The notes: generated by a model from the letters alone, not told the origin. A stretch of DNA of 64,000 nt from Hyaloraphidium curvatum SAG 235-1 (GCA_025558095.1 JAIVFI010000029.1:530753-594752), one strand, 5' to 3'. Shown: positions 11,133-64,000, counted from the first letter of the stretch. Numbers and translations are program-made.

Positions 11133-11254
11133 GATTGGGAAGACGATGAGACTCCCAGGGGGATCCTGCACTTGCGATTTGCCTGTTTGTGAGGGACTCC
11201 GCGACGCCATCACCGACACCAGTGCCCTCGCGCGCCAAACAGCGCTGGGACGCG

Positions 11255-37902: not shown

Positions 37903-39273
37903 ATGCCGCCCAAACCCAAGAAGAAATCCAAGGAGGAGCTCGAAGCCGAGCGGCTCGCCGCCGAAAAGGCCGCCAAGAAGGCCGCCGCCGAGGCCGCACG
38001 CAAGAAGGCGGAGGCGAAGGAGCGCAGGAGGCGGGAAAAGGCCGAGGCGGAGGAGCGGAGGAGGAGGGAGGAGGAGGAGAGGAGGGCGAGGGAGGAGGAG
38101 GTGCGTCGCCGGGGGTGGCAGGGGTTTGGGACGGGGATGACCGGGCCCGGCAGGAACGGAGACGGGAGGAGGAGCGGCTTTCGGCCCTCAACGGACCGCT
38201 CGTCGACCCCGAGTGGGCCGAGATCCGACGACAAGGTACGGCTTCTCGCCATTTCTGTCCTTTCCGCTGCTCACGCCGCGCGCAGACCGCGTCGCCGCCC
38301 TCCGCGCAAACATCTCCTCGCTGCTCCGCGGAACCCGCCTCGCCCTGGAGCACAAGGACCGCCTCCTCGACTCGCTGGCCTCGCAGTACGACGCCGCGGA
38401 CGCGCAGCACGCCGAGCTGCACGCACAACACCTGGTCCGCCTCGAACGGCTCCGCGGGGAGCACCTGGCCCGGATGGCCTCCCAGCAAAAGCACTTTGTC
38501 GGCGTCGAGGGGGAGATGGCGCGGCAGCGGTTCGCCGAAGCCGCAGCCCGCGTGAGGGAGCAGGGGCGGCGCCTGGTGGGGCGGCGCGGGGGGGAGCACG
38601 CGGCGTGGAGGGCTGCGCAGGCGGCCGCCGAGGAGAGGAGGGAGGAGGAGCGGCTCGCGAGGATCACGGAGCGCCGCGAGAACGTGGGTTCCTCGGCCTC
38701 CCTGCCTTGCGCGGGATTGCGGGGTCAACCGGCCCGGAACAGCTCCTGCAGGCGTACCACACCGCGCGGCTTTCCCTCCTCTCGCAGCTGCAATCCGTCC
38801 GCGCCCACGCGCTGCAGCTGGCCAGCGACCACGATGCGTCCACCGGCGCGCAGCGCGCCGAGTGCGAGTCCATGCGGGCGAGGCTGGAAAAGCTCGAGGG
38901 GGAGCTTGCAGAAGCCGGGGAGAGGGAGGCGAGGGTCAGGAGGGCGTGCGACGCTGCGGGGAGGAGGTTGGAGGGGATCACGGGGGAGAGGATGGGGAGG
39001 CCGGGGACCGCGGGGACCGCGGCGAGGGTGGGGTCGGCGGGGAGCGACAAGACGGGGCGGGCGGGATCGGCGGGCAGTTCGGGTGCAGGGGAAGGGGATC
39101 TGGAGGAGCAGCACCGGGAGGGCGAGCTGCAGCCGCTGCCTGCCTCACCGCGGCACAACAAGTCGAGGTTCGACGAGGCCGAGTTTGCGGATTTGAAGCG
39201 TCAGGTCGCCGAAGTCGCTGCGCGCAACATCGAGCTCCGCCGGGCCCTCGAATGCCGGAGACCTTCCAGATAG
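37903..39273 (+). CDS. Coiled-coil protein of unknown function, multi-exon
   Basis: MPPKPKKKSKEELEAERLAAEK..; E/R/K-rich heptads; GT..AG introns near 38100, 38235 and 38685. Confidence 0.55.
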   Translation: MPPKPKKKSKEELEAERLAAEKAAKKAAAEAARKKAEAKERRRREKAEAEERRRREEEERRAREEEVRRRGWQGFGTGMTGPGRNGDGRRSGFRPSTDRSSTPSGPRSDDKVRLLAISVLSAAHAARRPRRRPPRKHLLAAPRNPPRPGAQGPPPRLAGLAVRRRGRAARRAARTTPGPPRTAPRGAPGPDGLPAKALCRRRGGDGAAAVRRSRSPREGAGAAPGGAARGGARGVEGCAGGRRGEEGGGAAREDHGAPRERGFLGLPALRGIAGSTGPEQLLQAYHTARLSLLSQLQSVRAHALQLASDHDASTGAQRAECESMRARLEKLEGELAEAGEREARVRRACDAAGRRLEGITGERMGRPGTAGTAARVGSAGSDKTGRAGSAGSSGAGEGDLEEQHREGELQPLPASPRHNKSRFDEAEFADLKRQVAEVAARNIELRRALECRRPSR

Positions 39274-39354
39274 ATAGACAACTAGAATGACATCGACGAT
39301 AAGTCAGCCCTATGCACGTTCCGCCCCGCCCGCGCATCCCTTCTCCACCTGTCT

Positions 39355-41350
39355 CTAGTCCAACACCTCCTCCCCCGGCTCCAGCACCCCCGTCCCGATC
39401 CCCTCCCCCGCCCTTCTCAGCCTCTCCTCCGTCACATCCGCCAGCTCCGCGGTCCCGCTCCCCCTCCTCCCAACGTGCACCGGCGAGTCCAGCGCCTGCC
39501 GCCGGAGCCGCTCCTCCGTCAGTTCGGCGAGATCCGAGACGTTGCTCCCGCGGCGGCCGATGGTCAGCCTGTGCGCGGCGGGGTTGGCCAGGCGCGCGGA
39601 CTGCGGGGATGTGGGCTCGCGGTCGCCCGGGGGCGGGGTGGGCAAGGAGCCCGCGGTGTCGACCGCCGGCCTGCCGGGTGCGGGCTCGGGCTCCGGGCCG
39701 AGGATGTCGTCCGCGTGGCTGACGAGCACCTCGGTCTCGGTCTCGCCGGGGGTCGGGGGACGGTCCCGGCCTTCCCAGACGCGGCGGAGGTACTGTGCGA
39801 GGTGGCGGTCGGTGCCGGTGGAGTGGTTCGTGAACCTGTGCGGGTGCGCATCCAGTCAGCACGGGCGACACGCGGCGCCCGCCGGCAGGGGCGACCCACC
39901 AATCGACGAGGAAGATCTGGATCTGGAACACGTTGAAGGACGGCTCGTGCTCCCCGCTCTCGATCTGCGCCTTCATCAGCAGGAAGTACTCAATGAAGCT
40001 CCTGTGCTCCCGCACGTGCTCGAAGGTGAACGGGTAGCGGTACCGGAGCATGTACCCGTACTCGGTGCCAAAGTGCTCCTTGGCGTACTGCGCCAGAAAC
40101 CCGAGGATGCGCGAGACCGAGGCCGTGTCGCCGTCCTCGACGTGCGGGGCGAGCTCGTTGATGTGGTCCAGCAGGGTGTGGTGCTGCTCGTCCATCTTTT
40201 CCACGCCCAGGACAAACTCCGTGGTCCAGGGGGTGGTCCCCGCCACGAGCTCGCCGGTGGTTTCCCAGGCGCCGCCGGCGAGGGTGCGCTCGCACCGCGC
40301 GACGTAGGCCAGCGCCGCCGGGTCGTCGGGGGCGCGGGAGAGGCATTCCCGGAACAGCGAGAGCGCGTGGTCGACCTCCTTCATGTGGTACAGGCCGACG
40401 CCCTTTTCAAAGGTGCCGCGGGTGGCGATCTTGGCCGAGCGGAGCGGTTCCGGGTCCGTCTCGAAGACCTCGTAGATGCTCTGCGGGTGGGCCTTGCCCT
40501 TGACCCGGAGGCGGTCCATGTACCGCGTAGTGACGCCGGGAGCTTTCCCAAGAGAGTACATCGTGGCCTCCGATACCAGCAGGGGCACGCCGTACACCTT
40601 GGTCGCCGATTCGAGCCGCGAGGCGAAATTGACCGCGTCCGAGACCACCGTGACGTCCTTGCGCGCGCCGCCGCCGATGGTGCCGACGGCAGCCGCGCCG
40701 GTGTTGATTCCGATGCCGATCCGCACGGGTTCGAGGCCCAGCTCCGACCGGCCGACGTTGTAGCGCTGCAGCGCGCGCAGCATGGCGCACCCGGCGGCGA
40801 TGGCGTCGTCCCCGCCCCCGGGGTGCTTCTCCGAGCCGGGGAAGAGCGCCATGATGGCGTCGCCGACGTACTTGTCGACGAACCCGCCGGCGTTCTCGAT
40901 GCAGGGCTCGAGGATCCCCAGCAGCGAGTTGACGAAATCAAAGGTGTCCGCGGGGGTCAGGGACTCGCACGTGGCGGTGAAGTTGCGCACGTCGCAGAAC
41001 ATGACGGTGAGCTTCCGTTCCGCCGAGTCGCCCAGCCTGAGGCCGGTGATGTCGGTTTTGCCCAGCATCTCGACGAACTGCTGCGGGACGAACTCGCGGA
41101 CGGCCCGCTCGAGCCGCCGCGCCCGCTCGGCCGCCAGCCGCTCGCCCGCGCGCGCGGCCTCGATCTCCTCGGCGAGCTTGGCCGCGGCCTCCGCCGACAG
41201 CGGCGCGCCGACCTCCGCGCCGGCCGCCCGCAGCGCCGCGAGCGGGTCGGCGCCGCCGCGCTCCTCCGGCTGCGGCGTGCCCGGCTGCGGCGTGCCCGCG
41301 CGGGACGGCGACCGCCCGAGCGAATTAAACAGCCCGCCGAGGAACGACAT
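39355..41350 (-). CDS. Class III adenylyl cyclase + TPR-like hairpin + hemerythrin domain; intron 39836-39899
   Basis: VMFCDVRNFT, VDKYVGDAIMALF, RIGIGINTG, DVTVVSDAVNFASRLES, VKGK. Then GVEKMDEQH, HFGTE, HVREH and W|FTNHSTGTD hemerythrin ligands. Confidence 0.9.
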
Positions 41351-41904
41351 GGCGCGGAGCGGGGCTGCCGGGTGGCCCTTGTGACTCGTCCCAGGATTCG
41401 CGCCACCTGCGTCATTCGTCACTAGGGACCTCCATCCTCCGCGCCCCACGCCGACGTGACCTCATCCGAAGAAAGTCGGTTTCCCGGTGCCATTGCATCG
41501 GACCGAGACGGGCATTATCGATAGGCGCTCGGACAGGGACCTCGGACGACGGCACGTCGGTCCCCGTGCTCGAGCCGTCCTTTCGCGCCTCGCCGCACCG
41601 CTGCCCGCCGTCCGCCCTTGTGGTCCCCCAAACCAAATCATGTGGACATCTAGTGCCGCTTTGTGCCCTTCCCAGACGGGATCCGCCGATCGACATGCAC
41701 CGTCACCTCGCCTCCCTGCTGAAGCCGCGTATGGGTCAACCTTCCAACGACGACCTCCTCCGAGCACACACGATAAGTCCAAATGAAAACGACATGAGAT
41801 GAACTATTGACCCCAAATGGCTGTACATTGCGAGCCGACGACTTCATGGGCCCGCTTTTGCGTTCCAAGCCTGCTTTCCAAACCCAAGGCCTGCACCCCC
41901 CACC

Positions 41905-47986: not shown

Positions 47987-49490
47987 CTGGCGTGGGTTTC
48001 ATGCGGACGACGGGGGCGTCGCGCGATGCCTCCGCCCGGGGCACAACCCCGCCAGCTCCGCCCGTGACCGTCCGCTGCACGGAATGGGGTCCAGGGACTT
48101 TTGGGTGGGCAGGATGGTGCCGCGATCGTGCTGTGGAGATCATCGCCGGTGCCGGTTGGCGCCGGCGCGTCCGAGCTGCGGTCGCGGCTCCAGACTCGGT
48201 TCCCCGTGGCGACTGGTGCTGCCGTCCTTGAGTTACGGGTGCCAATCCTGGCGGCAGCGATCGGAAGGCGTCGTCTGGCACCAGCGTTGCAATGCCTTCC
48301 CGCCCAAGTCCGTTGGCCGCCGCCTGGCCAGATTCCAAGTCCAACGTCCCCATACCCGGTCCCGATGGCTGGTCTCGTCCACCGACGGCGACACTAAGAA
48401 CTGCATGGCCGCTGCGGCCTGCCCCGCAAAGCAGGCCGGAGATCGAGCTCTGTGCCACCGTCGGAGTGGTTTTGCCGATCGCGGGAACGCCATGTCCGAT
48501 GCTCGCAGACCGGTCCAGTGACTGACTTCCGGCTCTTTCGAATCGTCTCCCGATCGCGAAGTGACCGCGGCGGTGGTTTCCAAACGGATGAGCAGCCCTG
48601 GTCGCCAGAGTTGACTGGCGACCGTCCGCTCCGTGCAAGGACCACCGCCGCCTGTCCGCGCCCAGACGGAGTCCGAACAGTCGGGACCTCCCACGCAGCG
48701 ATCGCGCCGAGGAGGTGCTGGTGGGGCGTCAAGGCTCCAGATCGGCTGGGGGCTTCTCGCGACGCCCCCGCCGGTCGCCTTAGCCCCGCCAGCTCCTCCC
48801 GTCCCCGATGCGATGGTTCCGGTCCATGATTGCCGAAATAGTTGATGGTGACGGCGATGGCCCGGTTTCTCCAACAGGCGCTTCGTAGACGCCAGCACCC
48901 GTTCAAGGAATGTGCCAGATGCGGCCGTAGTTCTGGCGGCGGACCTTGAAGTAGCAGGGCTCGGCGTCTGCGTCGTCGACGCCGGTCCGCTCTCCGCCTG
49001 CAGCCCGCCGCCTAGCCCCCTCGGTCCGATCCCGCCGCCGTGGTTCTGGCGGCGGACCCTGAAGTAGCAGGGCTCGGCGTCTGCGTCGTCGACGCCGGTC
49101 CGCTCTCCGCATGAAGTCCGCCGCCTGGCCTCCTCGGTCCGACCCCGCCGAGTCCGACGACACTGTCCACCCACCCAATCCGCGTCCTCGCATCGCAGCG
49201 CCCATAAGCGGTCCTGGCCGTCCGGGCCGGTGCTGGCGGGGGGCATCAGAACTCATTCGGGGGTTCTTGCGACGTCCCCCGCAAGCCGATCAACACCGCC
49301 AGCTCCGCCGATGTGCCTCGCGTCAGGTGTGTCCAGTTTGTCACCCAGTTCGTCGATCCTGTTCTTTGCCGAGAAGAGTCCCGCGGATGCCGCGAGCGGA
49401 ACTGGGTGTCGTCGTTCGCCGGCACCGGTACCGTCCGGCACCGGCGTGCTGCATCTCCGTCCGCCCGCGGCCCCCTGCTCGAGCATCCGG
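47987..49490. repeat. Diverged direct repeat, copy 2
   Basis: Same blocks as copy 1 in the same order, with indels and an internal duplication. Confidence 0.85.
48930..49150. repeat. Two-unit tandem duplication (~110 bp) inside repeat copy 2
   Basis: TTCTGGCGGCGGACC(T/C)TGAAGTAGCAGGGCTCGGCGTCTGCGTCGTCGACGCCGGTCCGCTCTCCGC occurs at ~48931 and ~49044. Confidence 0.9.
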
Positions 49491-50406: not shown

Positions 50407-51261
50407 ATGGAGGACGATAGAAGGCAGTCTGCTCCGCTGGGCACCGCGGTGGTCACGTCGACCGGCTTCCTCGCTACGCACCTCGCCGCCCGCCTCCGTC
50501 GCCTGGGATTCCGCACGGTGCACACGACGCGGGACGACGTGCCGGCCATCCGGGATTTCCTAGTGCGCGAAGACCCCTCGCTGATCGTGCACTGCGCCGC
50601 GGCGCTCTCGGGGGAACCGCGGGGCATGTTCGACGCCAACGTGTCGCTCACGATGGAGGTGCTCGAACACTGCCGCCTCGCCTCGCCGCGGTGCCGCCTG
50701 ATCCACTTGGGCTCTTCGTCGGAATACGGCGCGCTTCCGGGGCCCAACAGGGGCACGGACCCGCTCGAACCGCGGACCGTCTACGAAGGCACGAAAGCAG
50801 CAGCCACGATGCTCGTCCGCGCGTGGTCCTCCACCTTCGGCTTCCCCGCGTGCGTCGTGCGCCCCTACTCCGTCTACGGTCCGGGGGACCGGCCCGAGCG
50901 GTTCACGCAGCTCCTCCTGCGCAGGCCCGCGAGGGTGCGGATCACGCCGGACGCGACGCACGACTGGATACACGTCGACGACTTCTGCGAGGCCGTCGCG
51001 CGCGTGGTGCTCGCCGCCAAACCGGGGTTCGACGTGGTGGACGTGGGAACGGGCGTCGCGACGACCAACGCCGGCCTCGTCGAAGCGTTTCAGCGGGTGC
51101 TCGGGTTTAAGTGCGAGGTCGACGGGTCGAGGCCGAGGAAGGAGGGGGACAGGGACAACTGGCTCGCGGACACGCGGCATTTGCAGGAAGAGTACGGATT
51201 CAGGGCGGGGATAGGGCTGGAGGAGGGGATCAGGAGGATGGCGCAGGCCGTCGAGACTTGA
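50407..51261 (+). CDS. NAD-dependent nucleotide-sugar epimerase/reductase (extended SDR), intronless
   Basis: Degenerate Gly-rich motif VTSTGFLA, IVHCAA, IHLGSSSEYG, YEGTK (YxxxK), RPYSVYGPG, DWIHVDD, LEEGI. Confidence 0.9.
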   Translation: MEDDRRQSAPLGTAVVTSTGFLATHLAARLRRLGFRTVHTTRDDVPAIRDFLVREDPSLIVHCAAALSGEPRGMFDANVSLTMEVLEHCRLASPRCRLIHLGSSSEYGALPGPNRGTDPLEPRTVYEGTKAAATMLVRAWSSTFGFPACVVRPYSVYGPGDRPERFTQLLLRRPARVRITPDATHDWIHVDDFCEAVARVVLAAKPGFDVVDVGTGVATTNAGLVEAFQRVLGFKCEVDGSRPRKEGDRDNWLADTRHLQEEYGFRAGIGLEEGIRRMAQAVET

Positions 51262-51667
51262 ATGGGGAAGATGGCCAGCCGAACAATAGATAGACCAGAA
51301 ACAAAAGATACAGCAGTCACATTGAACCCACCTCGCACCACGCCTGCCCCTCATATGTACCCTTACCGAGTCCATGTTGGAGATGGGACGCCCTCGCCCA
51401 CGCGGCGTCATCGGATGCGGAGTTGGATAGTGGCTTCATGGGCTTGGACCATGGGCACGGGCCACGAGCGCGGGCCAGGTTGGACCGTGGCCGCGCTCGG
51501 GCCGCAACGGATACATATTCGCGGTGTATTGGAGCGGAGTTCGATGACCGAAGACCTTTCCTGGAACCCCCGATGCGCGGCCCGCTAGCCCACACTCGTA
51601 CCTTGAGCGGCGTCGCCGCCCGTGGGACTCAGCCCCGCGGCGCGCTAATCTTCTACAGTACAAACCC

Positions 51668-53608
51668 TTACGCAGTCCACTTGAACCTTTTCCCCACCGC
51701 GGAGCAATCCCCATGGCACTTGTACCCCGCGTCGATGAACTTCACCGCCACGCGGAGCACCGCCACAATGGCCCTCTGCGCCCGGCGGACGAAAACCTTG
51801 GGGACCACGCCGATCCCGGCGGCGGGAACCGGCCGTCCCCGATAGAGGAGGTACTGGCGCATGAGCTCCTTCTGTAGGGGGTTCAGCTGGCGCCCGAGCT
51901 GCTATCAAGGCCGAAACGCACCAGATGCACGTTCATCTCCTTGCCCTTGGTCCGCGCGAGCTCGGCGAGGTCCTTGTCCGCGTGTTCCTCTTTCGAACGG
52001 CACCTCGGCGCAAATTCGGATCCCTGGAGATGGAGCAGGTCAGCGGTTGCGGGTCCGGTTTCCAGCGTCGGGACTCACCGGTTGAGTGAAGACCAGCTCA
52101 ATGAAGGCCGTGAGACCGGGGTAGCTCCCCTCGTCCCCCGGGACCGACACCGTTTCCTCCTCCGACTCTGCCTCGGGCTCCTCCGCCTCCGACTCCTCAT
52201 CACACGGCTCCTCGTCGTCGTCGTCGTTAGCCGGCGTCCGCGACGATCCCGGCGGCGACTGGGACTCGAGGCGGTAGCGGATGCCGTTATCGTCGCCATT
52301 CTCCGGCGACATCGTCCCGTTCGGGCCCACAACCTTGTAGACGACCTCCCCTGCCACGACGGAACATGAACCGCGACTCACATGTGCGGGCTCAAAAGGC
52401 ACCCACCGGTGGGGAGCTTGACTGGGGCCATCCTCTCCAGCGCCCAGAACTTTGTAGGCGCCGTCCGGTTCCGCTTGCTCTTCCTCTCTTGACCGTCTTC
52501 ATCCTCCGCAGGCTGAGTTCTCGGGCAATGAACCTCGTTGGTGTCCTTCCGTCGTTTTCTGAGCGGAACTGGCTCGTCCTCCTCCGATCCATCCTCCGAC
52601 ATGTCTTCCCCGCGGGACTCGAATGAGGTTGAGCTGCTGGCCCGGGAGCCGGTGCGTTTCGGCGGCCTCCCCCGACGCCGCTTCGTGGGCCGCGGAGGCT
52701 CCTCCGGCCACCCCCAATCGTCGCCGCCGGCATGTCCCGGGCTGTCGCCGCGGAATGAGCTGTCGCCGTTTCGCTGCCACCCGCGGCGTCCGGCGGGCGG
52801 CGTTGGCTCGTCCTCCTCCGATCCCTCCTCCAACCCTTCCTTCTCGCCGCCGTGAGCCGATGTCGGACTGGTGTCCCGGAATCCGTTGCCGAATAGCTGC
52901 GCCCTGCGCCCATCACGAAGCCGCACCGGCTGCCCCGCTTCCGAACCCCCGGCCAGGCCTTCTTCGTCGCCGCCCCCAACCCGTCCCCCCTCCTCCTCCT
53001 GCTCGCCACCCCGGGCCTGCGCGGCCCTGAAGCGGGCCTCGGGAGCAGGCTCCGGGCTCCAGCGAGGTGGAGCACCCATCCGATCCGCCGGCGAGTGGGC
53101 TTGGAGCGCCACGAGGCCCGAGATCTTCTCAATGAGCTCGGCATGACGCACCTCCAGGCCCTCGAGGCGAGCCACGCGCCCCTCGAGCGGTAGATCGGTG
53201 CCGGAGGGCGCACGTAGCAGCCCTTCACGTAGCAGCCCTTCGAGGCCGGCAACGCGGGCGGCGAGGCGCTCGAGGTCCTCCCGGGACGCAGTGGCTGCCT
53301 CGCGGCGTTTGGCTGCCTGGGCGGGCGCAGCCTGCGGCGCGTCGGCCGGCCTGAGGAGCGACGCGTGGAGCGGAAGCTCGACGTCGCCAACCCCCGCGAT
53401 CTCGACCAACGCCAGCTGCGCGATGGTCATGCGCCGCAGGTCAGGCCACGAGCTTTCCGCCGCCGGGCGAATGCGGCCGTGCATCCACGGCCCGGAGAGC
53501 GAATCCCGCGCCCGGACGCCGGCGCCAGGGGAAAGGCCGTGTGACGCGAGGGCGGAGCGGTACGCGTCCTCCGCCCGCGCCCTATCAGAAGCTCCAGGGT
53601 CATTCATT
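51668..53608 (-). CDS. Hypothetical nuclear-type protein with coiled coil, AT-hook-like motif and acidic tracts, multi-exon
   Basis: Long first exon containing KRRRGRPPKR and a repeated GSEEDEP; GT..CAG introns link it to the acidic ORF 52040-52402 and to 51668-51862. The 3' end is uncertain. Confidence 0.5.
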
Positions 53609-53745
53609 GCCGGCAGCCGCACGCCGAGATGCGATGGTGCGGGCGTGCCGTCCCCCGAAGGGACTGACGTGACTTCGATACAGGCAGGACGGGTCCTAGC
53701 CCCGTGTCGCCGGCGGAAGCAACTCTTCGTCTACCCCACCGCGCC

Positions 53746-55569
53746 TCACACCCTCCGCCAACCCCCCTTCCCCTCCAGCCTCGGCGCCGGCGGCACCGGC
53801 AGCCCCAACCCGCCAACATCCACCGCCGGGCTCATGTTGTCCAGCCCGTTCCCGAACTCCACCTTGGGCGCGATCGCCTGCTCCGGGTGCACGACCACCT
53901 CGAGCAGCCCCGGTCCCTCTTGCGCGAAGAAGCCTTCGACCTCAGAGGGCGGGGTGGTGGGGAGCACGCGCAGGGAAGGGAGGCCGTATGCCGCGGCGAT
54001 GGCGGCGAAGTCGGGAGCGCCGCAGTCCCCGTAGAGGTCCCCCGCCCCCGTCCCGGCGCGGCGGCCGCCCAGGTAGCTGTCCTGGAACCCGGCGATGATC
54101 CCGTACCCCGCGTTGTTCACCACCACCACCTTCAGGTCCGGCGAGAGCCTCCGGAGCGTGGCCAGCTCGCCGACGGTCTGCTGCATCCCGCCGTCGCCCA
54201 GCACCGCGACCACGTGCCTTCCCGGGCAGGCGACCGCCGACCCGAGAGCGGCGGCGAGCGCGTAGCCCATGGACGAGTTGGCCAGGGAGGAGTAGACGCG
54301 CTGCCCGGCGCGGGGAAGGAGGGACTGCATGCACCAGATGAGGGTGGCGCCGGTGTCGATCGCGACCGTGGCGTCGTTCGGCAGGGGGAGCGAGGAGAGG
54401 AACGCGTACGGCGAGACGCCGCCTTCCCGTGCAGCGCGGGGTTCGGCTGGGAGCTGCGCACGCCACGAGGCGACGGAGACGAGCCAGGGTGCGTGCTTGC
54501 CGGGGGGAAAGCGCGGGTCGCCTTCGGCGGGCATGGCGAGGGCGAGAAAACGCGAGGCGTCGCAGGCGACCGCGTGATCGAGGGCAACTCCGCGCTCCTG
54601 CAGCCGTGCGGGCTCTTCGGGGTCGATGTCCACCGCGATCTTCCTGCTGGCCTTGGAAAACAGCGAGAGGTTGCCGCCCGTCTGCCTTGTGTCCAGCCTC
54701 GCGCCGATGGCCAGCAGGAGGTCCGCGTTCTGCACCGCCAGGTTGGCCACGCGGTCGCCGTACACCCCGATCGCGCCAAGGTTGAGCGGGTCGTCGGCGG
54801 GGAGCACGTCGAAGGCGCCCCATGTGAGCACGGCGGGGCATCCCGTGCGTTTCAGGAAGGCGCGGGCGGCGGCGGCGGCGTCGCGGGCGCCGTTGCCCAG
54901 GATCACCACGGGGCGTTCTGCGCGTTGGAGGTGGATCGTGATTTCCGCGATGGGGAGGGGGTTCTCGGGCGCGGGCGGGAGCTCGAGGTCGTCGAGGTAT
55001 CCGGGGAAGCCGTCGAGCGGCGTCATCTGCACGTTGACGGGAAAGTCCAGCACGCTGGGCCCGCGGCGGCCGGTCATTGCGGAGACCATCGCCTTGTGGA
55101 GCTGCGTCACCACTTCGTCCGGCGACGCGAGGTGCGCGGCGTGCTTGGCGAACTGGCCGAACGCCTCGACGACGGGCATCTCCTGGAAGCCGACCTGCCG
55201 CGGGCGCGCAGTCACCGCCCGCAGCGACTCCTTGACGTTGACCTGGCCGGTCAGCAGCAGCGCGGGGACCGAGTCGTAGAACAGCCCGCACAGGCCGTTC
55301 AGCGCGTTCTGCACGCCGGGGCCCGACGTGACGGCGACGCAGGCGGGTTTGCCGCACGCCCGGAAGTACCCGTCGGCGGCGTCGGCGGCCGCGTGCTCGT
55401 GCTGGAAACAAACGAGGTGCGCCCGCGGGTTGCGCGCCACGGCGTCGACGAACGGCGCGATGGCGCCGCCTTGGAGGACAAAGAAGGTGTCGACGCCCCA
55501 CCGCACGAGCTGCTCCACCACGAACTCGCAGGCCAGCGGCGGCGCATCGCCGGGCTCGCTGAGAGGCAT
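53746..55569 (-). CDS. TPP-dependent acetolactate-synthase-like enzyme, YerE-like, intronless
   Basis: FVLQGGA, HEHAAADAADGY, VTSGPG, DSVP..LTGQV, RQVGFQE, GPSVLDFPVNVQ, IGARLD, SMGYAL, GDGG..NN TPP motif; no mitochondrial presequence. Confidence 0.88.
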   Translation of the reverse strand: MPLSEPGDAPPLACEFVVEQLVRWGVDTFFVLQGGAIAPFVDAVARNPRAHLVCFQHEHAAADAADGYFRACGKPACVAVTSGPGVQNALNGLCGLFYDSVPALLLTGQVNVKESLRAVTARPRQVGFQEMPVVEAFGQFAKHAAHLASPDEVVTQLHKAMVSAMTGRRGPSVLDFPVNVQMTPLDGFPGYLDDLELPPAPENPLPIAEITIHLQRAERPVVILGNGARDAAAAARAFLKRTGCPAVLTWGAFDVLPADDPLNLGAIGVYGDRVANLAVQNADLLLAIGARLDTRQTGGNLSLFSKASRKIAVDIDPEEPARLQERGVALDHAVACDASRFLALAMPAEGDPRFPPGKHAPWLVSVASWRAQLPAEPRAAREGGVSPYAFLSSLPLPNDATVAIDTGATLIWCMQSLLPRAGQRVYSSLANSSMGYALAAALGSAVACPGRHVVAVLGDGGMQQTVGELATLRRLSPDLKVVVVNNAGYGIIAGFQDSYLGGRRAGTGAGDLYGDCGAPDFAAIAAAYGLPSLRVLPTTPPSEVEGFFAQEGPGLLEVVVHPEQAIAPKVEFGNGLDNMSPAVDVGGLGLPVPPAPRLEGKGGWRRV

Positions 55570-55758
55570 CGCAGCGGCGTGCGGGGAGGAGAGAAGCTGA
55601 CTGCGGCGGCCCCTGTCCTCAATGGGGGACGCCCCAGCCACCCCGCTCGCGGCACCGGGGACACAGACCAAGGCCTCGCTCCCGCAGCCGGCGTCTGTCC
55701 CGCAGCTAGCCTGCGGGTTCCTTGCTTTAGGCGCGCAGTCGGCTGCCCCGTTCCCGCG
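55570..55758. promoter_or_regulatory. Probable bidirectional promoter shared by the TPP enzyme and the dehydratase
   Basis: Only 189 bp separate the divergent ATGs at 55569 and 55759. Confidence 0.5.
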
Positions 55759-57051
55759 ATGGCGCCGCACGACGGCCCCCCGTCCCCGGCTGACTCGACC
55801 GCGGCGGCAACCGCCGAGCACTTCCTGCCGCCGGCGCCCGCCGCCGCCGCCCCGAAACCGCCCTTCCGCCGCGTGTGGTACGCCCCCAACGGCTTCCAGG
55901 CCTACGGCGACGCCGAAATCGACGCCGTCGTGGCGTCCCTCAAGGCAGGCTGGATCGCGGGGACGGGCCCCGCCTCGCAGGAGTTCGAGCACCGCACCGC
56001 CGCGCTATTCGGCCACGACCATGGCTTGCTGGTTAATTCGGGGTCGTCGGCGAACCTGCTCGCGCTCGCGGCGCTGGACCTCCCGAAAGGCGCTGGCGTC
56101 GTGACCCCGGCATGCACGTTTGCGACAACGGTGGCGCCCATCGTTCAGCTGGGGCTCACTCCCCAATTCTGCGACGTGGATCCCGCCACCATCGTACCCA
56201 CCCTCGACATGATCCTCTCGCGGGTCACCGCAGACACCCGCGCGATCATGCTCCCCAACCTGAACGGCTTCCTCCCCCCCTTCCCCGCCCTCCGCGCCGC
56301 CCTCCTCTCCGTCAACCGATCGGACATCTTCCTGATCGAAGACTCGGCCGACACCCTCGGCCACCCCCCGCAGGGCGCCGACGCCAGCACCACCTCGTTC
56401 TACGCCTCGCACGTGTGCACGGCGATGGGGTCAGGGGGGATGGCGACCTTTGCGAGGGCGGAGCACCGCGCGCGGGCGGCGATGCTGCGGGACTGGGGCC
56501 GCGCGGGGGACGACAGGGAGGACTTTGACTCCCGCTTCGGCGGGGAGGGGATCGACGGCATTCCCTACGACCAGAAGTTCCTCTACCTGGAGCCGGGATA
56601 CAACATGCGCTCGAGCGAGGCCAACGCCGCCTTCGGCCTCGTGCAGCTCGCCCGGCTCCCCGCCAACCTCGGACGCCGCCGCGCCAACTTCTCCCGCTAC
56701 ATGCAGCGGCTCGCCCCCCTCGCCGCACGCGGCCTGATCGCCCTCCCCCCCGCGGACCCCGGCGCGAACCTCCTCGCCATGTACCTCCGCGTCCCCGGCC
56801 CCGGCGTCCGCGTGCGCCTCCTCGCGCACCTCGAATCCCGCGGCGTGCAGACCCGCGTGTGCTTCAGCGGCAACGTCACGCGGCACCCGGCCTTCAGGCG
56901 GTACCTGGAGCCGTTCGAGGGGGCGGATGCGGTGATGCGGGAGGGGTTCCTCGTGGGGTGCCACCACGGGATGGGGGAGGAGGAGGTGGATTGGGTCTGC
57001 GGCGCGATCGAGGGCTTTTTCAAGGAGGAAGATGGGGCCAAGGAGGGGTGA
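55759..57051 (+). CDS. DegT/DnrJ-fold PLP enzyme, NDP-4-keto-6-deoxyhexose 3-dehydratase type (DdhC/RfbH/ColD-like), intronless
   Basis: VNSGSSANLLA, TPACTFATT..P, IEDSAD, SFYASH (His at the catalytic Lys position), RDWGR, YDQKF..GYN, QTR..FSGNVTRHPA. Confidence 0.88.
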   Translation: MAPHDGPPSPADSTAAATAEHFLPPAPAAAAPKPPFRRVWYAPNGFQAYGDAEIDAVVASLKAGWIAGTGPASQEFEHRTAALFGHDHGLLVNSGSSANLLALAALDLPKGAGVVTPACTFATTVAPIVQLGLTPQFCDVDPATIVPTLDMILSRVTADTRAIMLPNLNGFLPPFPALRAALLSVNRSDIFLIEDSADTLGHPPQGADASTTSFYASHVCTAMGSGGMATFARAEHRARAAMLRDWGRAGDDREDFDSRFGGEGIDGIPYDQKFLYLEPGYNMRSSEANAAFGLVQLARLPANLGRRRANFSRYMQRLAPLAARGLIALPPADPGANLLAMYLRVPGPGVRVRLLAHLESRGVQTRVCFSGNVTRHPAFRRYLEPFEGADAVMREGFLVGCHHGMGEEEVDWVCGAIEGFFKEEDGAKEG

Positions 57052-57154: not shown

Positions 57155-59440
57155 TCACCAAAATGCCTTTAGGTCCGGCAGCGCATCCTTCCGCTGCCCC
57201 AGCAGCACGCTCAGCGGCGCTTCCTTCGCCCCGTGCGCCGCACCTTCCTCGTCCGGGTCCGGCGCCCGGAGGCTCCGCGCTTGATACTCGTCCCTGCCCC
57301 AGGTCTCGTGCACCAGCACCCGCGCGTCGAACCGCACCCGCTTGCTCGTCCCCGGTTGCGGGATCGCGACCAGCGGGTCGCTCTCGTGCGCGTCGCCCTC
57401 CTCGGTCCCGCCCGACGACACCTCCGACGCCGTCCCCTTGCTCGAGACCAGCGACTCCCCGCCGCGGATCCGCTCCGTCGCGCACAGGTAGCACGCGCCC
57501 TCGACGTGCAGCGCCCCAGAGTGGGGGCAGGTCCCCGCGCCGCGGCGGGCGCTGCGCAGCAACTGCACCTCCGCCGGCCCGAGCCGGGCATCGGGGGATG
57601 CGAGCAGCCGGGTGAGGAGGGCGTGCGCGGGGCGGTACTGCGGAAGCCCGGAGGATTCCAGCACGGCGAGGCAGGCCCGGGCGTCCGAGGTGATGGCCGC
57701 GTGCAGTTCCAAAGCGCGCGCCTGCTCGGCGGTGGGGGCGGCGGCAATGAGAACCTTGAAGCGGCGGAGGACGAGCACGTGCACCCAGGCGGCGTGGATC
57801 GCGGCGAGGGAGGAGAAGAAGGCGGCGAGGTACGAGGGGGGCGAGGGCGGGCGGGGAAGCGCGGCCAGCGAGCGCGACAGGGAGGAGATGCCGATCGCGG
57901 CGCGGTTCGCCGCCGCGAAGGAGGGCGTGAGGAACCAAGCGTCTGCGTTGGCCGGCAGGGTCGACGAGTCGGAGGTGGCGGTGCCGCTGGAGTTGGATGC
58001 GGAGAGGTCCGAGTGCGACCCCGGAGCAGCAGGGCCGGGGGCCGCCAGTAAGCCCGACGCCTGTTCGAGCGGGTTCTCGAAGAGGTCGGGGCACACGGGG
58101 AGCATGACAACCAGCTGGAGGACCACCAGGATGCCAAAGAGCTGCTCCCGCGCCATATCCGGCAGGCCAGCGAGGGCAGCCATCACGCCGCCAGCATCGC
58201 CGCGCGTCCACGGGTCCGCGACGGCCGGCGGCAGTGCGGATTGGAGCAGGTCCGCGCCCTCCTCGAGGAACTGTCTCCGCCGCATGGCCTCCGCCAGCAT
58301 CTCGTTGGCCAGGAGCGACTCGACGTAGGCGTCGTCGACGTCCAGGGCGCGCGCCGCGGCGGAGGGGGCGGCCCCCTCGCCCGTCTGCCTGAGGACTTCC
58401 TCGGCCACCAGAACGTCGAGCAACGCGAGGCCGGCGTCGGAGCGCAGCCACGTCGAGTACTCGGCGATCTTCTGCAGGGCGAAAAAGACGAGAAATCCGG
58501 CGTACAGCGAGCCCGTGCGGTCCATGGTTCCGATGCTGTGCTGCAGGACTGCTTCGCGGCGGTCTGGGGAGACGCGCGTGCGCTCCAGGGGGTCGAGCCA
58601 GCCGAAAAAGTGCCCGCACCGGAAAGGGGGGGCGCGGTCCAGCAGCTCGTTCGGGATTGGCCCGTTGGGAGGGCGGCGGCCGGGCGGGGCCAAGGAGAGG
58701 TAGGCGTCGCCGGGGAACAGGAACGGCGCGGATGGGAACTCGGCGGCGGGGTCAAACACGGCGGCTGTTCGGGTGGTCGACGCCATCGTCATCTCGAACA
58801 CGGTGGCAATCCAGAAGGCCGACAGGCGGTGCTGCCAGAGCAGCCAGTCGTCCAGGCCGCGGGGATTCACGGGGCAGCGGTCCTCGCCGGGCACGCCGGC
58901 GCGGCGCCACAGGGCCACCAGCTGGCGCACGAACGCGCGAGCGCCCTCGATGCGAGACATTTGCATGTGAAGGAATCCGATCGCCGTCATGAGAGTCCAC
59001 TCGAGGGCGACGAGGTCGACGGAGAGGGGGTCGGAGCGGGCGCGGCGCTGGGCGTCCGGATTTCCCCAGAACGACGAGAGGGCCCGGCGGAGCGCCCCGT
59101 TGAAGCGCGCCTCGAGACGGGAAACGAGGTCCGCGGTGTCGTGGGCGGGCCCGAGCGCGTCGGCCGCCCCGCGGTCGGCGAGCACGCGGGCGCCGATCCA
59201 TTGCCAGACCGACGCGAACAGCGGGTGGCCGAAGAACGCCGCCCACCGCGGGTCGGCGGCGTGGGCGGGCTCTGCAGAGGGCGGCTCGGCGGCGCCGACG
59301 GCCTCGAGGAACGCCTGCCCGGAAAACGGAGAAGCACCGGGCGGAACGGTCGCCGCGAACGCCACGGCCGCCGCCCGCTCGGCAGGGGGGCTCAGGAGGT
59401 CGTCGCCGCCGCTGCTCCACGAGACATCGGATTCGGCCAT
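57155..59440 (-). CDS. Fungal transcription-factor middle-homology-region-like protein with a C-terminal RVxF motif, intronless
   Basis: W..RLSAFWIATVFEMTMAS..AVFDP..P resembles the fungal_TF_MHR core; no N-terminal Zn2Cys6 is visible. Confidence 0.55.
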   Translation of the reverse strand: MAESDVSWSSGGDDLLSPPAERAAAVAFAATVPPGASPFSGQAFLEAVGAAEPPSAEPAHAADPRWAAFFGHPLFASVWQWIGARVLADRGAADALGPAHDTADLVSRLEARFNGALRRALSSFWGNPDAQRRARSDPLSVDLVALEWTLMTAIGFLHMQMSRIEGARAFVRQLVALWRRAGVPGEDRCPVNPRGLDDWLLWQHRLSAFWIATVFEMTMASTTRTAAVFDPAAEFPSAPFLFPGDAYLSLAPPGRRPPNGPIPNELLDRAPPFRCGHFFGWLDPLERTRVSPDRREAVLQHSIGTMDRTGSLYAGFLVFFALQKIAEYSTWLRSDAGLALLDVLVAEEVLRQTGEGAAPSAAARALDVDDAYVESLLANEMLAEAMRRRQFLEEGADLLQSALPPAVADPWTRGDAGGVMAALAGLPDMAREQLFGILVVLQLVVMLPVCPDLFENPLEQASGLLAAPGPAAPGSHSDLSASNSSGTATSDSSTLPANADAWFLTPSFAAANRAAIGISSLSRSLAALPRPPSPPSYLAAFFSSLAAIHAAWVHVLVLRRFKVLIAAAPTAEQARALELHAAITSDARACLAVLESSGLPQYRPAHALLTRLLASPDARLGPAEVQLLRSARRGAGTCPHSGALHVEGACYLCATERIRGGESLVSSKGTASEVSSGGTEEGDAHESDPLVAIPQPGTSKRVRFDARVLVHETWGRDEYQARSLRAPDPDEEGAAHGAKEAPLSVLLGQRKDALPDLKAFW

Positions 59441-59943
59441 CGCTAGGACAGGCGCACGTCGGGACGCTGTCCTAGGCGGGATGCGGTCCGTCCGCCGCGC
59501 GGTCCGCAGCGGGAACGGCCCGGACCGCTGACCAAGACAGGATCTCGGTATTTCCACCGCCTTGGGAAGACCCCCAGAGCTGCACCGGAGGAGTGCGGAA
59601 ACTGGTAAACAACGTCGGCCATGGTCCGTCGTCGGTCCCGACGCACGACGGACGGTTGCGCTCGCTTCGGGCCTCGCCGGCGGGAACCGGCCAGTGTGCG
59701 TGGCAAAGCAAATTTCCGACCTCACTCTCCCCAGCAATCCGGGATCCGATCCTCCGGACGATCAGGCTCTTTCTAGTGCTCGTCGAATAGTCTTGCTACA
59801 ATGTTCCCGCGTTTCCGCTTCCGCCAACAAAAGGGGCCCCGCGCACCCGACCACCACGCGCGCACGGAGCGTTTCGGATCGACCTTGAGAGTCAAAATGC
59901 CCCCCCCCCCCCCCCCCCGCCCACCCGCGAACGTCACCACGAT

Positions 59944-60699
59944 TCACCACCGCTCGACCCAGGGCCGAAGCGCCACCTCGAACGCCCAGGCCGAGCGATG
60001 CTGCCGGTGAAGCTGGAGGTACGTCTCGGCGATGGCGTCCGGATCGAGCTGGTTGTCGTCCACCGCCGTTCCCGCCATCCAGTGCGCCCTCGTCCCGTCC
60101 TCCCGCGTCCACCCGACCGCGCCGTCGATGGGCACATTGGCCACATGGATGCCCTGCGGCATCAACTCGCGCGCCATGCTCTGCGCGAGCCCGGTCTTGG
60201 CCTGGCACGCCATCGCGAAAGCGCCGCTGCCGGGGAAGCCCTTGATGGCCGCCGTGGCGTTGGTGAAGATGACCGTGCCCCGCTTGCCGCCGGCGTCGGG
60301 GGGGTTGGCCAGCATCGCGCGGGCGGCTTGCTGGCCGACGAGGAACGCGCTGAACGAAGAGTTGCGGATCGTCGCGAAGGCAAGCTCGGGGTCGGCCTCG
60401 GCGATTCCCTTCCGGAAAATGCCGGGAACGCGTCCGTCGATGTTGTGAACCACGAGGCGGACCGGGCCGAGGTCGCGGGAGACTGCGACGAACAGGGCCT
60501 CGACCGCCGCCGGGTTCGCCGCGTCGCAGGCATAGAGCCGAACGCCGTGGGACGCCTCGAGCGCGAGGAGCACCGGTTTGGCGGGGTCGCGGGCGGCCAC
60601 GGCGACGCGCAGCCCGTGGGAAGCCAAGAGGCGGGCGCAGCTGGCCGAGATGCCGGGGCCGCCGCCGACGATGAGGGCGACTTCAGGCGCGTTCGCCAT
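59944..60699 (-). CDS. Short-chain dehydrogenase/reductase, bacterial-like, intronless
   Basis: ALIVGGGPGIS, CDA, GTVIFTNATA..KG, GLAQSMARELMPQGIHVA, LHRQHRSAWAFEV.LRPW. Confidence 0.9.
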   Translation of the reverse strand: MANAPEVALIVGGGPGISASCARLLASHGLRVAVAARDPAKPVLLALEASHGVRLYACDAANPAAVEALFVAVSRDLGPVRLVVHNIDGRVPGIFRKGIAEADPELAFATIRNSSFSAFLVGQQAARAMLANPPDAGGKRGTVIFTNATAAIKGFPGSGAFAMACQAKTGLAQSMARELMPQGIHVANVPIDGAVGWTREDGTRAHWMAGTAVDDNQLDPDAIAETYLQLHRQHRSAWAFEVALRPWVERW

Positions 60700-60879
60700 C
60701 GTGAAGAGGGCAGCGGTCGCAGCGACACGTACGCTCCGCAGACCGAATGGACGCACGACGAAACGCGGGTTTCGAAATGCGGAGCGGCAGAACGTTGTCC
60801 GTAACGGTGGTTCAAGGGACTGCGCGGCAACCTCCGCACGCGCAGCACCGCCCAATCCCAAACCCCTGATTCGGCAACC

Positions 60880-61740
60880 GGTTGCCCTCCGAACCCACAG
60901 TGCGTTCGGCGTACCCGTGCCTCCCACCGCCCGCGCACGCTTTCGACCCGCCGCACTGTCCCGTTCTCCTCAGCGAATCGGCAGTCTCGCGCAGCTCGTC
61001 GCCGTGGAGGCAGCTCAGCTCCATCCCCCGCACGGGGCTCCCGCAGCCCGCGGCCGAGGCGGGCGGCAGTCCAGGCAGTTCAACATTATTGCAGGCATCT
61101 CTTCGTATTCCAGCCGTTCCGAGGAGAATAGCTTCTGGATGGCGGTGTCGCGGTGCCAGAGTGGCGCGGGGTTCGACTGATTGTTCGACAAACTCCGCAG
61201 AAGGGGGCGCCAGTAAGATTGATGAACACCGGGGGGCGCTCAGCGCCTGTGATAGAGATCTGATGAACACCGGCGTGCCTCCACCCGAGATCGTCGAACG
61301 AAGCGAGTCCGTGGTCCTGATCTTGGCCAGCCCGAAATCGGAGATCTTTGCCACGCCGTTCTCGTCCACGAGCACATTCTCGCCCTTGAGATGGAGGCGC
61401 AGGATGGGCGTCGGCAGCGAGTGCTGGTGGTTCATCCCGAGCGCGACCTGGAAGAGCAGGTGGTGAACCGCGCGGGTCTCCCATGGCGTTGGCTTGAGCT
61501 TCGTGAGGTAGTCCTTGGCGGTGGCCCCCCATGAGGAGCGTGACGAGGCACATGGGTTTGCGGCACCATCCCATGAGCGGCAGAACTGCGTGATCGTGCC
61601 TTGGTCAGTGGTGGAAACCCGAAACGCGTTGGCCGGAAGGGCTCACCGTTGACGTGCGGAGGCAACCTCCCCCAGACATCCATCTCCTTGTCGACCTCCG
61701 CAATCACACTGCGTCCTACGCCCATGTGCTTGCCCCCTTC
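60880..61740 (-). pseudogene. Degraded TKL protein kinase
   Basis: EMDVWGRLPPH.N, GWCRKPMCLVT, LLFQVALGM, ILRLHLKGENVLVD (catalytic Asp lost), KISDFGL; frameshifts; no N-lobe start. Confidence 0.75.
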
Positions 61741-62120
61741 GAGGGCGGAACGGCCGTGGAGTTTGGACTCGCACCCGGACCGCGACGGAGGACGCCCCGT
61801 CCGCGCCGGGCGGTTCGGCTCGTGCGGAGCCGCAAGTGCCAGCGTCGGAACCCCCCCTGGCGGAGGAGGTGGAGCTGGGCCGCCTGTCGGCGTTCGTGGA
61901 CGCGGCCGAGCCGGCGCAGGGGAACATGGACGAGGCGGCGGTGGTGGCCGAGCTGAGCGCGATCGCGGAGGAGCTCGGGGAGGAGGACGAGGCGTACCCG
62001 GGGTCGCAGGTGTAGGAGCTCGAATCGAGGGTCGCGACACCGCTCGCCAGTCCGTTCCATTCACAGCCGCCTCCATTACTGCGGACCACTGGCTGAGTCA
62101 AACGGCCCACTCCAAGTACC

Positions 62121-63329
62121 ATGCCCGCCCCCCCCGGCGCCCCCTTGCCGTGCCGCCCGGCGGACCCGGCGACTGGCGCCTGCGAGGGGACGGCAAGGCG
62201 GCGGAGCCCGCGGCGGCGCCACTCGCCGCCGCCGCCCGGCGCACCGCGGTTCGTCGCGCCCGACTTCCTCCGCCAGTCCGCGGCGCCGCCGCTGCCGATG
62301 TCCCCGGCGCAGGTCAACTTCGGCCACCTTTTTGTGCTCACCGCGACGCCGCTCGCCGCGCTGTACGGCGTGTGGGCCGTGCCGCTGCGGGGGGCGACGC
62401 TCGCGTGGTGCGTCGCGTACTACTTCTGGAGCACGTTCGGCATCACCGCAGGCTACCACCGTTACTGGGCGCACCGCGCTTACGACGCCGGCCCGCTGCT
62501 GCGCGCGTTCCTGATGCTGGGCGCCACCGGCGCAGTGCAGGGCAGCGCCAGATGGTGGTGCGCCGGCCACCGCAGGCACCACCGCTACACTGACACCAGA
62601 TGGGACCCGTACTCGGCGCGCAAGGGCCTGCTGTGGTCGCACATCGGCTGGCTGCTGACAAAGGAGGACCCGGCTGACCTGGCGCCCGTCGACGCGTCCG
62701 ACCTCGACAGCGATCCCATGGTCGAGTGGCAGCGGCGGTTCTACGACGTGTGCGCCTTCTTCATGGGGTTCGTGTGGCCGGCGATCGTCGCAGGGGTGTG
62801 CTGGGGCGACTGGATGGTGGGCTGTCGCCCGCCGCGCCGGCGCACTCGGACTGATCGATCTCCGTTCCCCCGCGGATATCCCCCCCGCGACGAGCAGGGC
62901 GGCTTCTTCCATGCCGGCGCCGTCCGCCTTACGCTGATCCACCATGCCACTTTCTCCGTCAACTCCCTGGCCCACTACCTCGGCGAGGCGACATACACGG
63001 ACCGGCTCTCGCCGCGCGACTCGTTCATCACGGCGCTCCTCACGGGGGGCGAGGGGTACCACAACTTCCACCACGAGTTCCCGCACGACTACCGCAACGC
63101 GGTGCGCTGGTGGGAGTACGACCCGACCAAGTGGTTCATCCGCGGGGCCGCGTACCTGGGGCTGGCCTGGAACCTGCGGACGATGCCGGACAACGAGGTC
63201 AGGAAGGGGGAGCTGCGACAGCGGGAGAAGAAGCTGGAGCTGGAGAGGGCGGCGCTCGATTGGGGCGAGGTCGACGGCGGCACCGGGGCGGGCGACGGCG
63301 GACAAGTGGGCGGAGGGGCGGGGATGTAA
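62121..63329 (+). CDS. OLE1: Delta-9 acyl-CoA desaturase, OLE1-like, lacking the C-terminal cytochrome b5; intron 62817-62897
   Basis: GITAGYHRYWAH, HRRHHRYTDT..DPY, GEGYHNFHHEFP.DYRN, YDPTKWFI. Confidence 0.9.
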   Translation: MPAPPGAPLPCRPADPATGACEGTARRRSPRRRHSPPPPGAPRFVAPDFLRQSAAPPLPMSPAQVNFGHLFVLTATPLAALYGVWAVPLRGATLAWCVAYYFWSTFGITAGYHRYWAHRAYDAGPLLRAFLMLGATGAVQGSARWWCAGHRRHHRYTDTRWDPYSARKGLLWSHIGWLLTKEDPADLAPVDASDLDSDPMVEWQRRFYDVCAFFMGFVWPAIVAGVCWGDWMVGCRPPRRRTRTDRSPFPRGYPPRDEQGGFFHAGAVRLTLIHHATFSVNSLAHYLGEATYTDRLSPRDSFITALLTGGEGYHNFHHEFPHDYRNAVRWWEYDPTKWFIRGAAYLGLAWNLRTMPDNEVRKGELRQREKKLELERAALDWGEVDGGTGAGDGGQVGGGAGM

Positions 63330-63855: not shown

Positions 63856-63996
63856 TTAGGTTAGGGTTAGGTTAGGTTAGGTTAGGTTAGGTTAGGTTAG
63901 GTTAGGTTAGGTTAGGTTAGGTTAGGTTAGGTTAGGTTAGGTTAGGTTAGGTTAGGTTAGGTTAGGTTAGGTTAGGTTAGGTTAGGTTAGGTTAGG
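63856..63996 (+). repeat. Telomeric array (TTAGG)n
   Basis: 27 TTAGG units plus one TTAGGG (63861-63866), G-rich strand running toward the end of the sequence. Confidence 0.95.
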
Positions 63997-64000
63997 TTTG

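Follow-up and report, generated by a model that had tools for sequence, protein, structure and literature searches.

Three uninterrupted genes beside a telomere

We analysed the terminal 64 kb (hereafter the window; JAIVFI010000029.1:530753-594752) of a 594,752-bp contig of Hyaloraphidium curvatum SAG 235-1, whose genome assembly (GCA_025558095.1) comprises 31.9 Mb in 55 contigs, and focus here on a set of three genes (window positions 50407-57051) that may direct the synthesis of a branched dideoxysugar. The first gene (50407-51261, plus strand) encodes a short extended short-chain dehydrogenase/reductase (SDR) of 284 amino acids (aa) with a PF01370 domain. On the minus strand, positions 53746-55569 encode a putative YerE-like carboligase of 607 aa, which depends on thiamine diphosphate (ThDP), contains three thiamine pyrophosphate (TPP) domains and lacks a presequence. 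The third gene (55759-57051, plus strand) encodes a DegT-fold protein of 430 aa (PF01041), a candidate 3-dehydratase of the His type. All three are uninterrupted open reading frames (ORFs). The start codons of the ThDP and DegT genes point apart across an intergenic spacer of 189 bp (55570-55758), which is presumed to serve as a shared promoter.

The contig, and with it the window, ends in a telomere repeat, (TTAGG)x28, on the plus strand (63856-63998). As the window represents the last 64 kb of this contig, the gene set, lying 6.8 kb from the telomere, is subtelomeric. The repeat unit is the 5-mer TTAGG, not TTAGGG or TTTAGGG; TTAGG is the telomere repeat of arthropod type. The original prediction had placed an extended SDR, an acetolactate synthase (ALS)-like TPP enzyme without a presequence and a DegT-fold enzyme within 6.6 kb, the latter two head-to-head and 189 bp apart, and had called the position subtelomeric. 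Each of these features was recovered at this locus.

The genes are transcribed. A public sequencing run (X1) contains 92% of the words sampled from the region, and its contigs align collinearly with the SDR and ThDP genes and with the first part of the DegT gene. The 2.5 kb separating the SDR gene from the ThDP gene are occupied by an unrelated gene on the minus strand (51541-53622), in which one 3.7-kb contig of X1 skips 50, 55 and 56 nt (51872-51921, 52023-52077 and 52350-52405). These stretches end in CT..AC on the plus strand, corresponding to GT..AG on the minus strand, and represent three introns of this middle gene. Because the contig skips them, X1 behaves as cDNA; splicing is thus seen in the neighbours but not in the three sugar genes, in line with the predicted intronless genes among spliced neighbours. 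Furthermore, one X1 contig (55402-55793) crosses the entire 189-bp spacer, and in another (51541-55416), the 3' part of the ThDP gene is continuous with the spliced gene downstream of it. These two contigs suggest that transcripts overlap or read through, or that X1 includes some DNA.

Sequence features of the encoded proteins

The DegT-fold protein matched PF01041 with an E-value of 1e-64, and its top matches in the PDB were all 3-dehydratases, namely Yersinia E1 (3bcx), a putative 3-dehydratase acting on a nucleoside diphosphate (NDP)-linked 4-keto-6-deoxyglucose, and ColD. The match to E1 (E 1e-46, 163 bits) exceeded that to ColD (E ~1e-27, 99 bits). Since the motif 'FYASH' aligns with 'FYPAH(220)' of E1, a His occupies the position of the catalytic Lys of aminotransferases, and this column holds His in 47/47 members of the dehydratase family. 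Replacement of Lys by His is a hallmark of 3-dehydratases, and a four-cysteine [2Fe-2S] motif occurs in E1 and SpnQ, but not in ColD (PMC8987622). The alignment of the window family contains no conserved four-cysteine motif, just two of its Cys columns being near-invariant, and in the window protein 'RDWGRAGDD' stands in place of the Cys-rich E1 loop. E1/DdhC/RfbH was the best NCBIfam match, with 211 bits against the RfbH model (cut-off 423). Based on the absent [2Fe-2S] cysteines and the score under the cut-off, the DdhC/RfbH subtype was rejected for this protein. The comparison with DdhC/RfbH drawn beforehand thus holds for a 3-deoxygenating enzyme of the pyridoxamine 5'-phosphate (PMP) type with His in place of Lys, but not for the E1 subtype. 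Lack of the [2Fe-2S] site makes a ColD-like mechanism more likely, and an E3 reductase is probably not needed. The protein appears to be E1-like in sequence and ColD-like in cofactor logic, the likeliest mechanism being hydrolytic release combined with glutamate-driven regeneration of PMP.

In the ThDP enzyme, the TPP_enzyme_N, M and C domains were all found (PF02776, PF00205 and PF02775), and the absence of a presequence follows from the start of the N domain at residue 15. The ThDP motif GDG...NN (G458-D459-G460...N485-N486) is invariant in alignment A1, and the translation contains 'FQHEH', with the catalytic Glu expected of YerE-like enzymes. The top PDB match was 8rph with 250 bits (plant acetohydroxyacid synthase, AHAS: 220 bits); this structure is JanthE, a characterised YerE-like enzyme (PMC12188165). 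Enzymes of this type decarboxylate a 2-oxo acid and attach the remainder to NDP-4-keto-3,6-dideoxyhexoses at the C4 ketone (PMC12247030). The gene is present as a single copy in the genome, and its nearest paralogs are 30-36% identical.

It is conceivable that this protein represents a second, cytosolic AHAS, or a different carboligase that uses 2-oxo acids in amino-acid or acetoin metabolism, and that its proximity to sugar genes is coincidental. In favour of this, its top NCBIfam models are those of acetolactate synthase, relatives are named 'acetolactate synthase' by the Joint Genome Institute, and the PDB scores for AHAS are only 30 bits under that of JanthE. However, its 290 bits against TIGR00118 lie below the cut-off of 538, and it falls under every other curated acetolactate-synthase cut-off as well, while the genome contains a separate four-exon gene (C2:960015-962111; exon scores totalling ~700 bits) that is the real ILV2. 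The window enzyme also lacks the mitochondrial presequence expected of a fungal AHAS. ALS-like bacterial sequences (25-34% identity) are only a distant outgroup to the window enzyme, and the linkage of the latter to a sugar 3-dehydratase is kept across domains of life and viruses (see below). We consider an AHAS-type role highly improbable. Judging from these comparisons, the ThDP enzyme is not the housekeeping AHAS, and its assignment as a YerE-like carboligase distinct from ILV2, as originally proposed, is retained.

The SDR showed a PF01370 Epimerase domain (E 7e-30) and scored far under all NCBIfam cut-offs, the top model being RmlB with 85 bits (cut-off 365). The translation contains 'GSSSEYG' and 'YEGTK', providing the Ser and the YxxxK motif. 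The Thr-Asp-Glu motif of dehydratases is not present in this protein, which reads 'SSSE' instead of 'TDE'. Both the low RmlB score and this substitution indicate a reductase or epimerase type rather than the missing 4,6-dehydratase, and within the module the SDR probably acts as an NAD(P)H-dependent reductase.

Gene linkage and origin of the module

Comparison with related loci (numbered with the prefix L) showed that the genes belong together, as had been claimed. In the eukaryote-type contig L001, a ThDP homolog (59% identity) adjoins an orthologous dehydratase gene (55%), with genes for a TPT transporter and for another DegT protein of the His type alongside. L035, one of the unassigned contigs of a foraminifer-associated metagenome (PJEL00000000), is also of eukaryote type and encodes a ThDP homolog (43%) with the dehydratase (53%) directly upstream and an intron-split aldolase and a DHX29-like helicase alongside. 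Two further contigs of this type are L044 (ThDP 47%), with the order SDR, TPT, ThDP, dehydratase and GT47-, O-FucT- and GT90-like genes close by, and L002 (ThDP 53%), in which an SDR, a FUT8-like and a TPT-like gene are neighbours. The ThDP-dehydratase pair is therefore adjacent in at least three other eukaryote-type contigs (L001, L035 and L044).

A bacterial-type operon shows the order DegT, SDR, ThDP, SDR, DegT, GT2, and the nearest bacterial-operon homolog of the window ThDP enzyme is at most 47% identical to it. The original prediction had also mentioned related gene sets in some large algal viruses, and the module was indeed found in giant-virus contigs, which were recognised by capsid, RNA polymerase and VLTF3 genes of nucleocytoplasmic large DNA viruses (NCLDV). 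Giant-virus contig L045 encodes the ThDP enzyme and the dehydratase close to each other, along with two SDRs (one of them RmlB-like), a methyltransferase and PanB. In L060, a contig of a giant-virus metagenome-assembled genome (GVMAG), the pair is likewise closely spaced and belongs to a run of sugar genes, which includes those for an SDR of the window type, a GT10-like enzyme, an EamA transporter and a GT2 enzyme. Nucleotide-sugar transporters and fucosyltransferase-like glycosyltransferases flank the module in L001, L002, L044 and L060. A scan of IMG/VR returned 75 predicted viral loci with a ThDP relative, and a His-type dehydratase (49-55% identity) lies within ~3 kb in 65 of them. That this linkage persists in bacteria, viruses and eukaryotes alike argues most strongly for a common pathway of the ThDP enzyme and the dehydratase.

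PanB (3-methyl-2-oxobutanoate hydroxymethyltransferase) directly adjoins the YerE-like ThDP gene in two of the viral loci (L045:12764-13696 and L097:11714-12655). The L045 protein scores above its curated cut-off, and viral PanB may supply a hydroxymethylated 2-oxo acid as branch donor.

Relatives of the SDR show a looser distribution. Over its full length, the window protein shares 44% identity with the SDR of L044, which is encoded 1.6 kb upstream of the ThDP gene, and family members (35-36%) lie beside the ThDP/DegT pair in the viral loci L060, L089, L095, L097 and L118. A 55% ortholog was found in the same sample as L001, on the separate contig L053. In giant-virus contig L054, an SDR of the window type lies between split transketolase-like genes (8030-8506 and 10824-11444; Transket_pyr and Transketolase_N). 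This transketolase-type ThDP system differs from YerE, and the SDR family may also serve other ThDP branching systems.

A simpler product would be an unbranched 3,6-dideoxyhexose of the colitose, abequose or ascarylose type, made by the dehydratase and the SDR, with the ThDP enzyme acting separately, e.g. in the formation of an acyloin metabolite. A ColD-like dehydratase and a short reductase suffice for colitose-type sugars (PMC8987622), the intact Ser-Tyr-Lys triad of the SDR is typical for 4-ketoreductases and epimerases, and locus L046 encodes the dehydratase together with an RmlC/D-like fusion, a ThDP gene being absent within 10 kb. Such a division of labour is hard to reconcile with ThDP and dehydratase genes being neighbours in 65/75 viral loci, a bacterial operon and three or more eukaryote-type contigs, or with the 189-bp divergent spacer that the two genes share here, and we regard it as unlikely.

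The relationship of the ThDP enzyme was analysed in trees rooted on ALS-like bacterial sequences and built from reduced sets drawn from 128 rows. In the first tree, unplaced hits beyond P0030 were kept only if their number was divisible by 5; in the second, those beyond P0014 were kept only if divisible by 8, with P0026 and P0035 added. Seven distant ALS-like bacterial loci (25-34% identity), the sole returns of a genome-contig scan with the ThDP protein, served as outgroups. The window enzyme clusters with five context-checked eukaryote-type and nine unplaced sequences (Shimodaira-Hasegawa-like approximate likelihood ratio test, SH-aLRT, 99). None of the 19 sampled viral ThDP sequences falls within this clade, and the bacterial-operon sequence is also placed outside. 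The enzyme is distinct from the organism's own ILV2, and it stands apart from the ALS-like bacterial outgroups in trees that contain no named YerE, ErwE or JanthE sequence. As the clade consists only of sequences from eukaryotic context or unplaced ones, a recent bacterial transfer is unlikely. Sister clades of the module occur in giant viruses, other predicted viruses and bacteria. The dehydratase tree was unresolved at its base; a single clade of the four eukaryote-context dehydratases was not rejected by the approximately unbiased (AU) test, from which two distant paralog outgroups were left out (p 0.33), a value that is also not proof of the clade. The ThDP trees thus speak for a separation of this enzyme from AHAS.

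Being intronless, patchily distributed and related to prokaryotic and viral genes, the three genes are foreign-looking. They could even be foreign and not working, as a result of bacterial contamination, an assembly chimera or a recent silent insertion of a giant virus: close viral and bacterial relatives exist, none of the three contains an intron, and subtelomeres are typical landing sites of foreign DNA. Yet the genes are part of a 594-kb contig, flanked there by spliced eukaryotic genes and a telomere, their third-position G+C (GC3) of 0.89 is like that of neighbouring genes, and spliced X1 contigs cover them. Viral hallmark genes are absent among the large ORFs of the window, and the viral ThDP sequences remain outside the clade of the window enzyme. 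Other window genes are eukaryotic (ETF-QO, a pyridoxal 5'-phosphate enzyme, leucine-rich repeat kinases, a cyclase-hemerythrin protein and proteins with BRCT and HAM1_N domains). These genes, the spliced neighbours and the missing viral hallmarks make contamination or a fresh viral insert unlikely, and we find the idea of idle foreign DNA barely credible. Horizontal acquisition, as claimed in the original prediction, is not shown for this lineage, given the composition of the ThDP clade and the host-like codon usage. Any transfer would be old, with a donor among bacteria, viruses or other eukaryotes.

The G+C content of the window ranges between 63 and 73%. Upstream of the cluster, a 113-bp unit is repeated twice in tandem with 92% identity (48924-49150), in a stretch where coding-like ORFs are few, and a single open frame on the minus strand (38981-41461) combines adenylate/guanylate cyclase and hemerythrin domains. 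The large exon of the middle gene (52406-53622) gave no Pfam match. Convergent with the DegT gene lies a gene for an 860-aa protein (57158-59737, minus strand), which is weakly similar to fungal-specific transcription factors; it likewise had no Pfam match, and an Atlas feature search placed it at 0.90 to Fungal_trans/Zn_clus clusters, a result to be taken as a lead only. Between the cluster and the telomere, we found a classical short-chain dehydrogenase (adh_short; 59947-60969, minus strand) and a fatty-acid desaturase (62097-63326, plus strand), both probably unrelated to the sugar module. Homologs of the middle gene, the 860-aa gene, the adh_short gene and the desaturase gene are absent from every related locus compared, and these four were thus not counted in the module.

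Proposed pathway and comparison with known systems

Enzymes for the precursor had been expected outside the window, and multi-exon genes for GMD-like and RmlB/UGD-like 4,6-dehydratases as well as several nucleotidyltransferases are indeed encoded elsewhere in the genome, so that the substrate can come from the fucose or rhamnose routes. The amino- and deoxy-sugar repertoire is unusually rich for a fungus-like eukaryote. Eight DegT-family matches exceed the Pfam cut-off (E <=3e-21, internal stops 0). Proteins from seven loci (C24:606464-607501, C4:312183-313157, C37:182668-183732, C39:299371-300330, C21:392039-393121, C5:904111-905274 and C20:342878-343912) share 27-32% identity with the window protein, and 5/7 have the aminotransferase Lys. 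On the minus strand of C5 (903061-905274), one open frame of 872 aa contains a second His-type DegT dehydratase ('FSFYFSHH') and an RmlB-like SDR domain, and looks like a dehydratase-SDR fusion. A counterpart of this His-type DegT protein is encoded in L001 (611-1963), adjoining the TPT transporter.

We propose that the three genes constitute a transcribed nuclear gene set for an NDP-linked, C4-acyl-branched 3,6-dideoxyhexose resembling yersiniose, made by an Fe-S-independent variant of yersiniose logic, and we regard this as reasonably probable. The domains and residues, the conserved linkage and the transcription can be read from the data, whereas every chemical step is inferred, and so are the sugar itself, its nucleotide, the acid that donates the branch, the glycan that finally accepts the sugar and the part played by the SDR. 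In the first step, a 4,6-dehydratase encoded elsewhere would supply an NDP-4-keto-6-deoxyhexose, candidates being the GMD-like (GDP-fucose) and the RmlB/UGD-like (UDP-rhamnose) enzymes. The DegT-fold enzyme, using PMP and its active-site His, would then strip off the C3 hydroxyl; the 3-deoxy-4-keto product would probably be released by hydrolysis and PMP recharged from glutamate, as in ColD, with no need for an E3 reductase. Subsequently, the YerE-like ThDP enzyme would decarboxylate pyruvate or a longer 2-oxo acid and transfer the acyl anion onto the C4 ketone, giving a tertiary alcohol that bears an acyl branch. Finally, the short SDR would reduce a carbonyl group, most likely the one on the side chain.

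Several points weigh against this proposal. The RNA label of X1 is only a guess, and its contigs show neither expression level nor strand. The score of 5ahk (PpYerE) against the ThDP enzyme is no better than that of AHAS. With a JanthE margin over plant AHAS of just those 30 bits and trees without a named YerE sequence, the YerE-like assignment leans on gene context. The membership of the SDR is the weakest link, as an unrelated gene intervenes here and the ortholog in the closest relative lies on another contig (L053). No glycosyltransferase or transporter was found in the window. Clues to the nucleotide conflict as well: a GDP sugar is suggested by the fucosyltransferase-like neighbours in related loci, whereas the RmlB-like dehydratase of L045 and a DegT-fold sequence closer to E1 than to ColD speak for a UDP, dTDP or CDP substrate with glucose configuration.

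The closest known counterparts are bacterial. YerE-like enzymes (YpYerE of Yersinia pseudotuberculosis, ErwE, JanthE and MMAR_2332) have the AHAS-like three-domain architecture and the GDG...NN motif in common with the window ThDP enzyme, and in yersiniose/erwiniose clusters (PMC12247030, PMC9306805) the ThDP gene is linked to a 3-dehydratase and SDRs, likewise as in the window module. In contrast to these enzymes, the window ThDP gene is nuclear and eukaryotic, and belongs to a clade without a bacterial or viral member among those sampled. The dehydratase shares the fold and the His-for-Lys exchange with E1/DdhC/RfbH of Yersinia and Salmonella, but differs by the missing four-cysteine [2Fe-2S] motif, by the lack of a linked E3-type reductase and by a length that is ~50 residues shorter in its bacterial and viral relatives. 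ColD, the GDP-4-keto-6-deoxy-D-mannose 3-dehydratase of colitose synthesis, uses PMP and an active-site His and has no Fe-S cluster, as predicted for the window dehydratase, and its substrate is already made by eukaryotes through GMD. The window dehydratase is much less similar to ColD than to E1 (99 vs 163 bits), and ColD pathways contain no ThDP enzyme. Glycan gene clusters are known from giant viruses (Mimivirus, chloroviruses); the giant-virus contigs described here hold the ThDP, dehydratase and SDR module in addition to glycosyltransferases and methyltransferases.

A 2022 review of giant-virus glycans (PMC9614988) mentions neither thiamine, acetolactate or yersiniose nor a 3-dehydratase, so that the viral module appears to be undescribed in the literature searched. 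Moreover, 3-dehydratases are presented as a bacterial toolkit (PMC8987622), such enzymes go unmentioned in a survey of nucleotide-sugar pathways in fungi (PMC8092308), and all YerE-like enzymes that the searched literature names are bacterial. The surprise is the presence and conservation of the module in eukaryotes and giant viruses, which is undescribed in this literature.

More broadly, several lineages of microbial eukaryotes, this fungus-like organism among them, and many giant viruses might make an activated C4-acyl-branched 3,6-dideoxy sugar by an Fe-S-independent route that combines an E1-like/ColD-type dehydratase, a YerE-like enzyme and a short SDR. This route would be fed by a host intermediate of GDP-fucose or UDP-rhamnose synthesis, and the product would be moved into the secretory pathway by the linked transporters and attached by fucosyltransferase-like enzymes. 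We put this wider picture, which would imply a hitherto undescribed class of surface glycan in eukaryotes and viruses, forward tentatively, as possible rather than probable. If the module works as proposed, it would bring a sugar class new to the glycobiology of eukaryotes and giant viruses, define a large Fe-S-free subfamily of E1-like dehydratases, provide new ketone-accepting ThDP carboligases of biocatalytic interest and serve as a marker with which gene flow between bacteria, viruses and protists can be traced.

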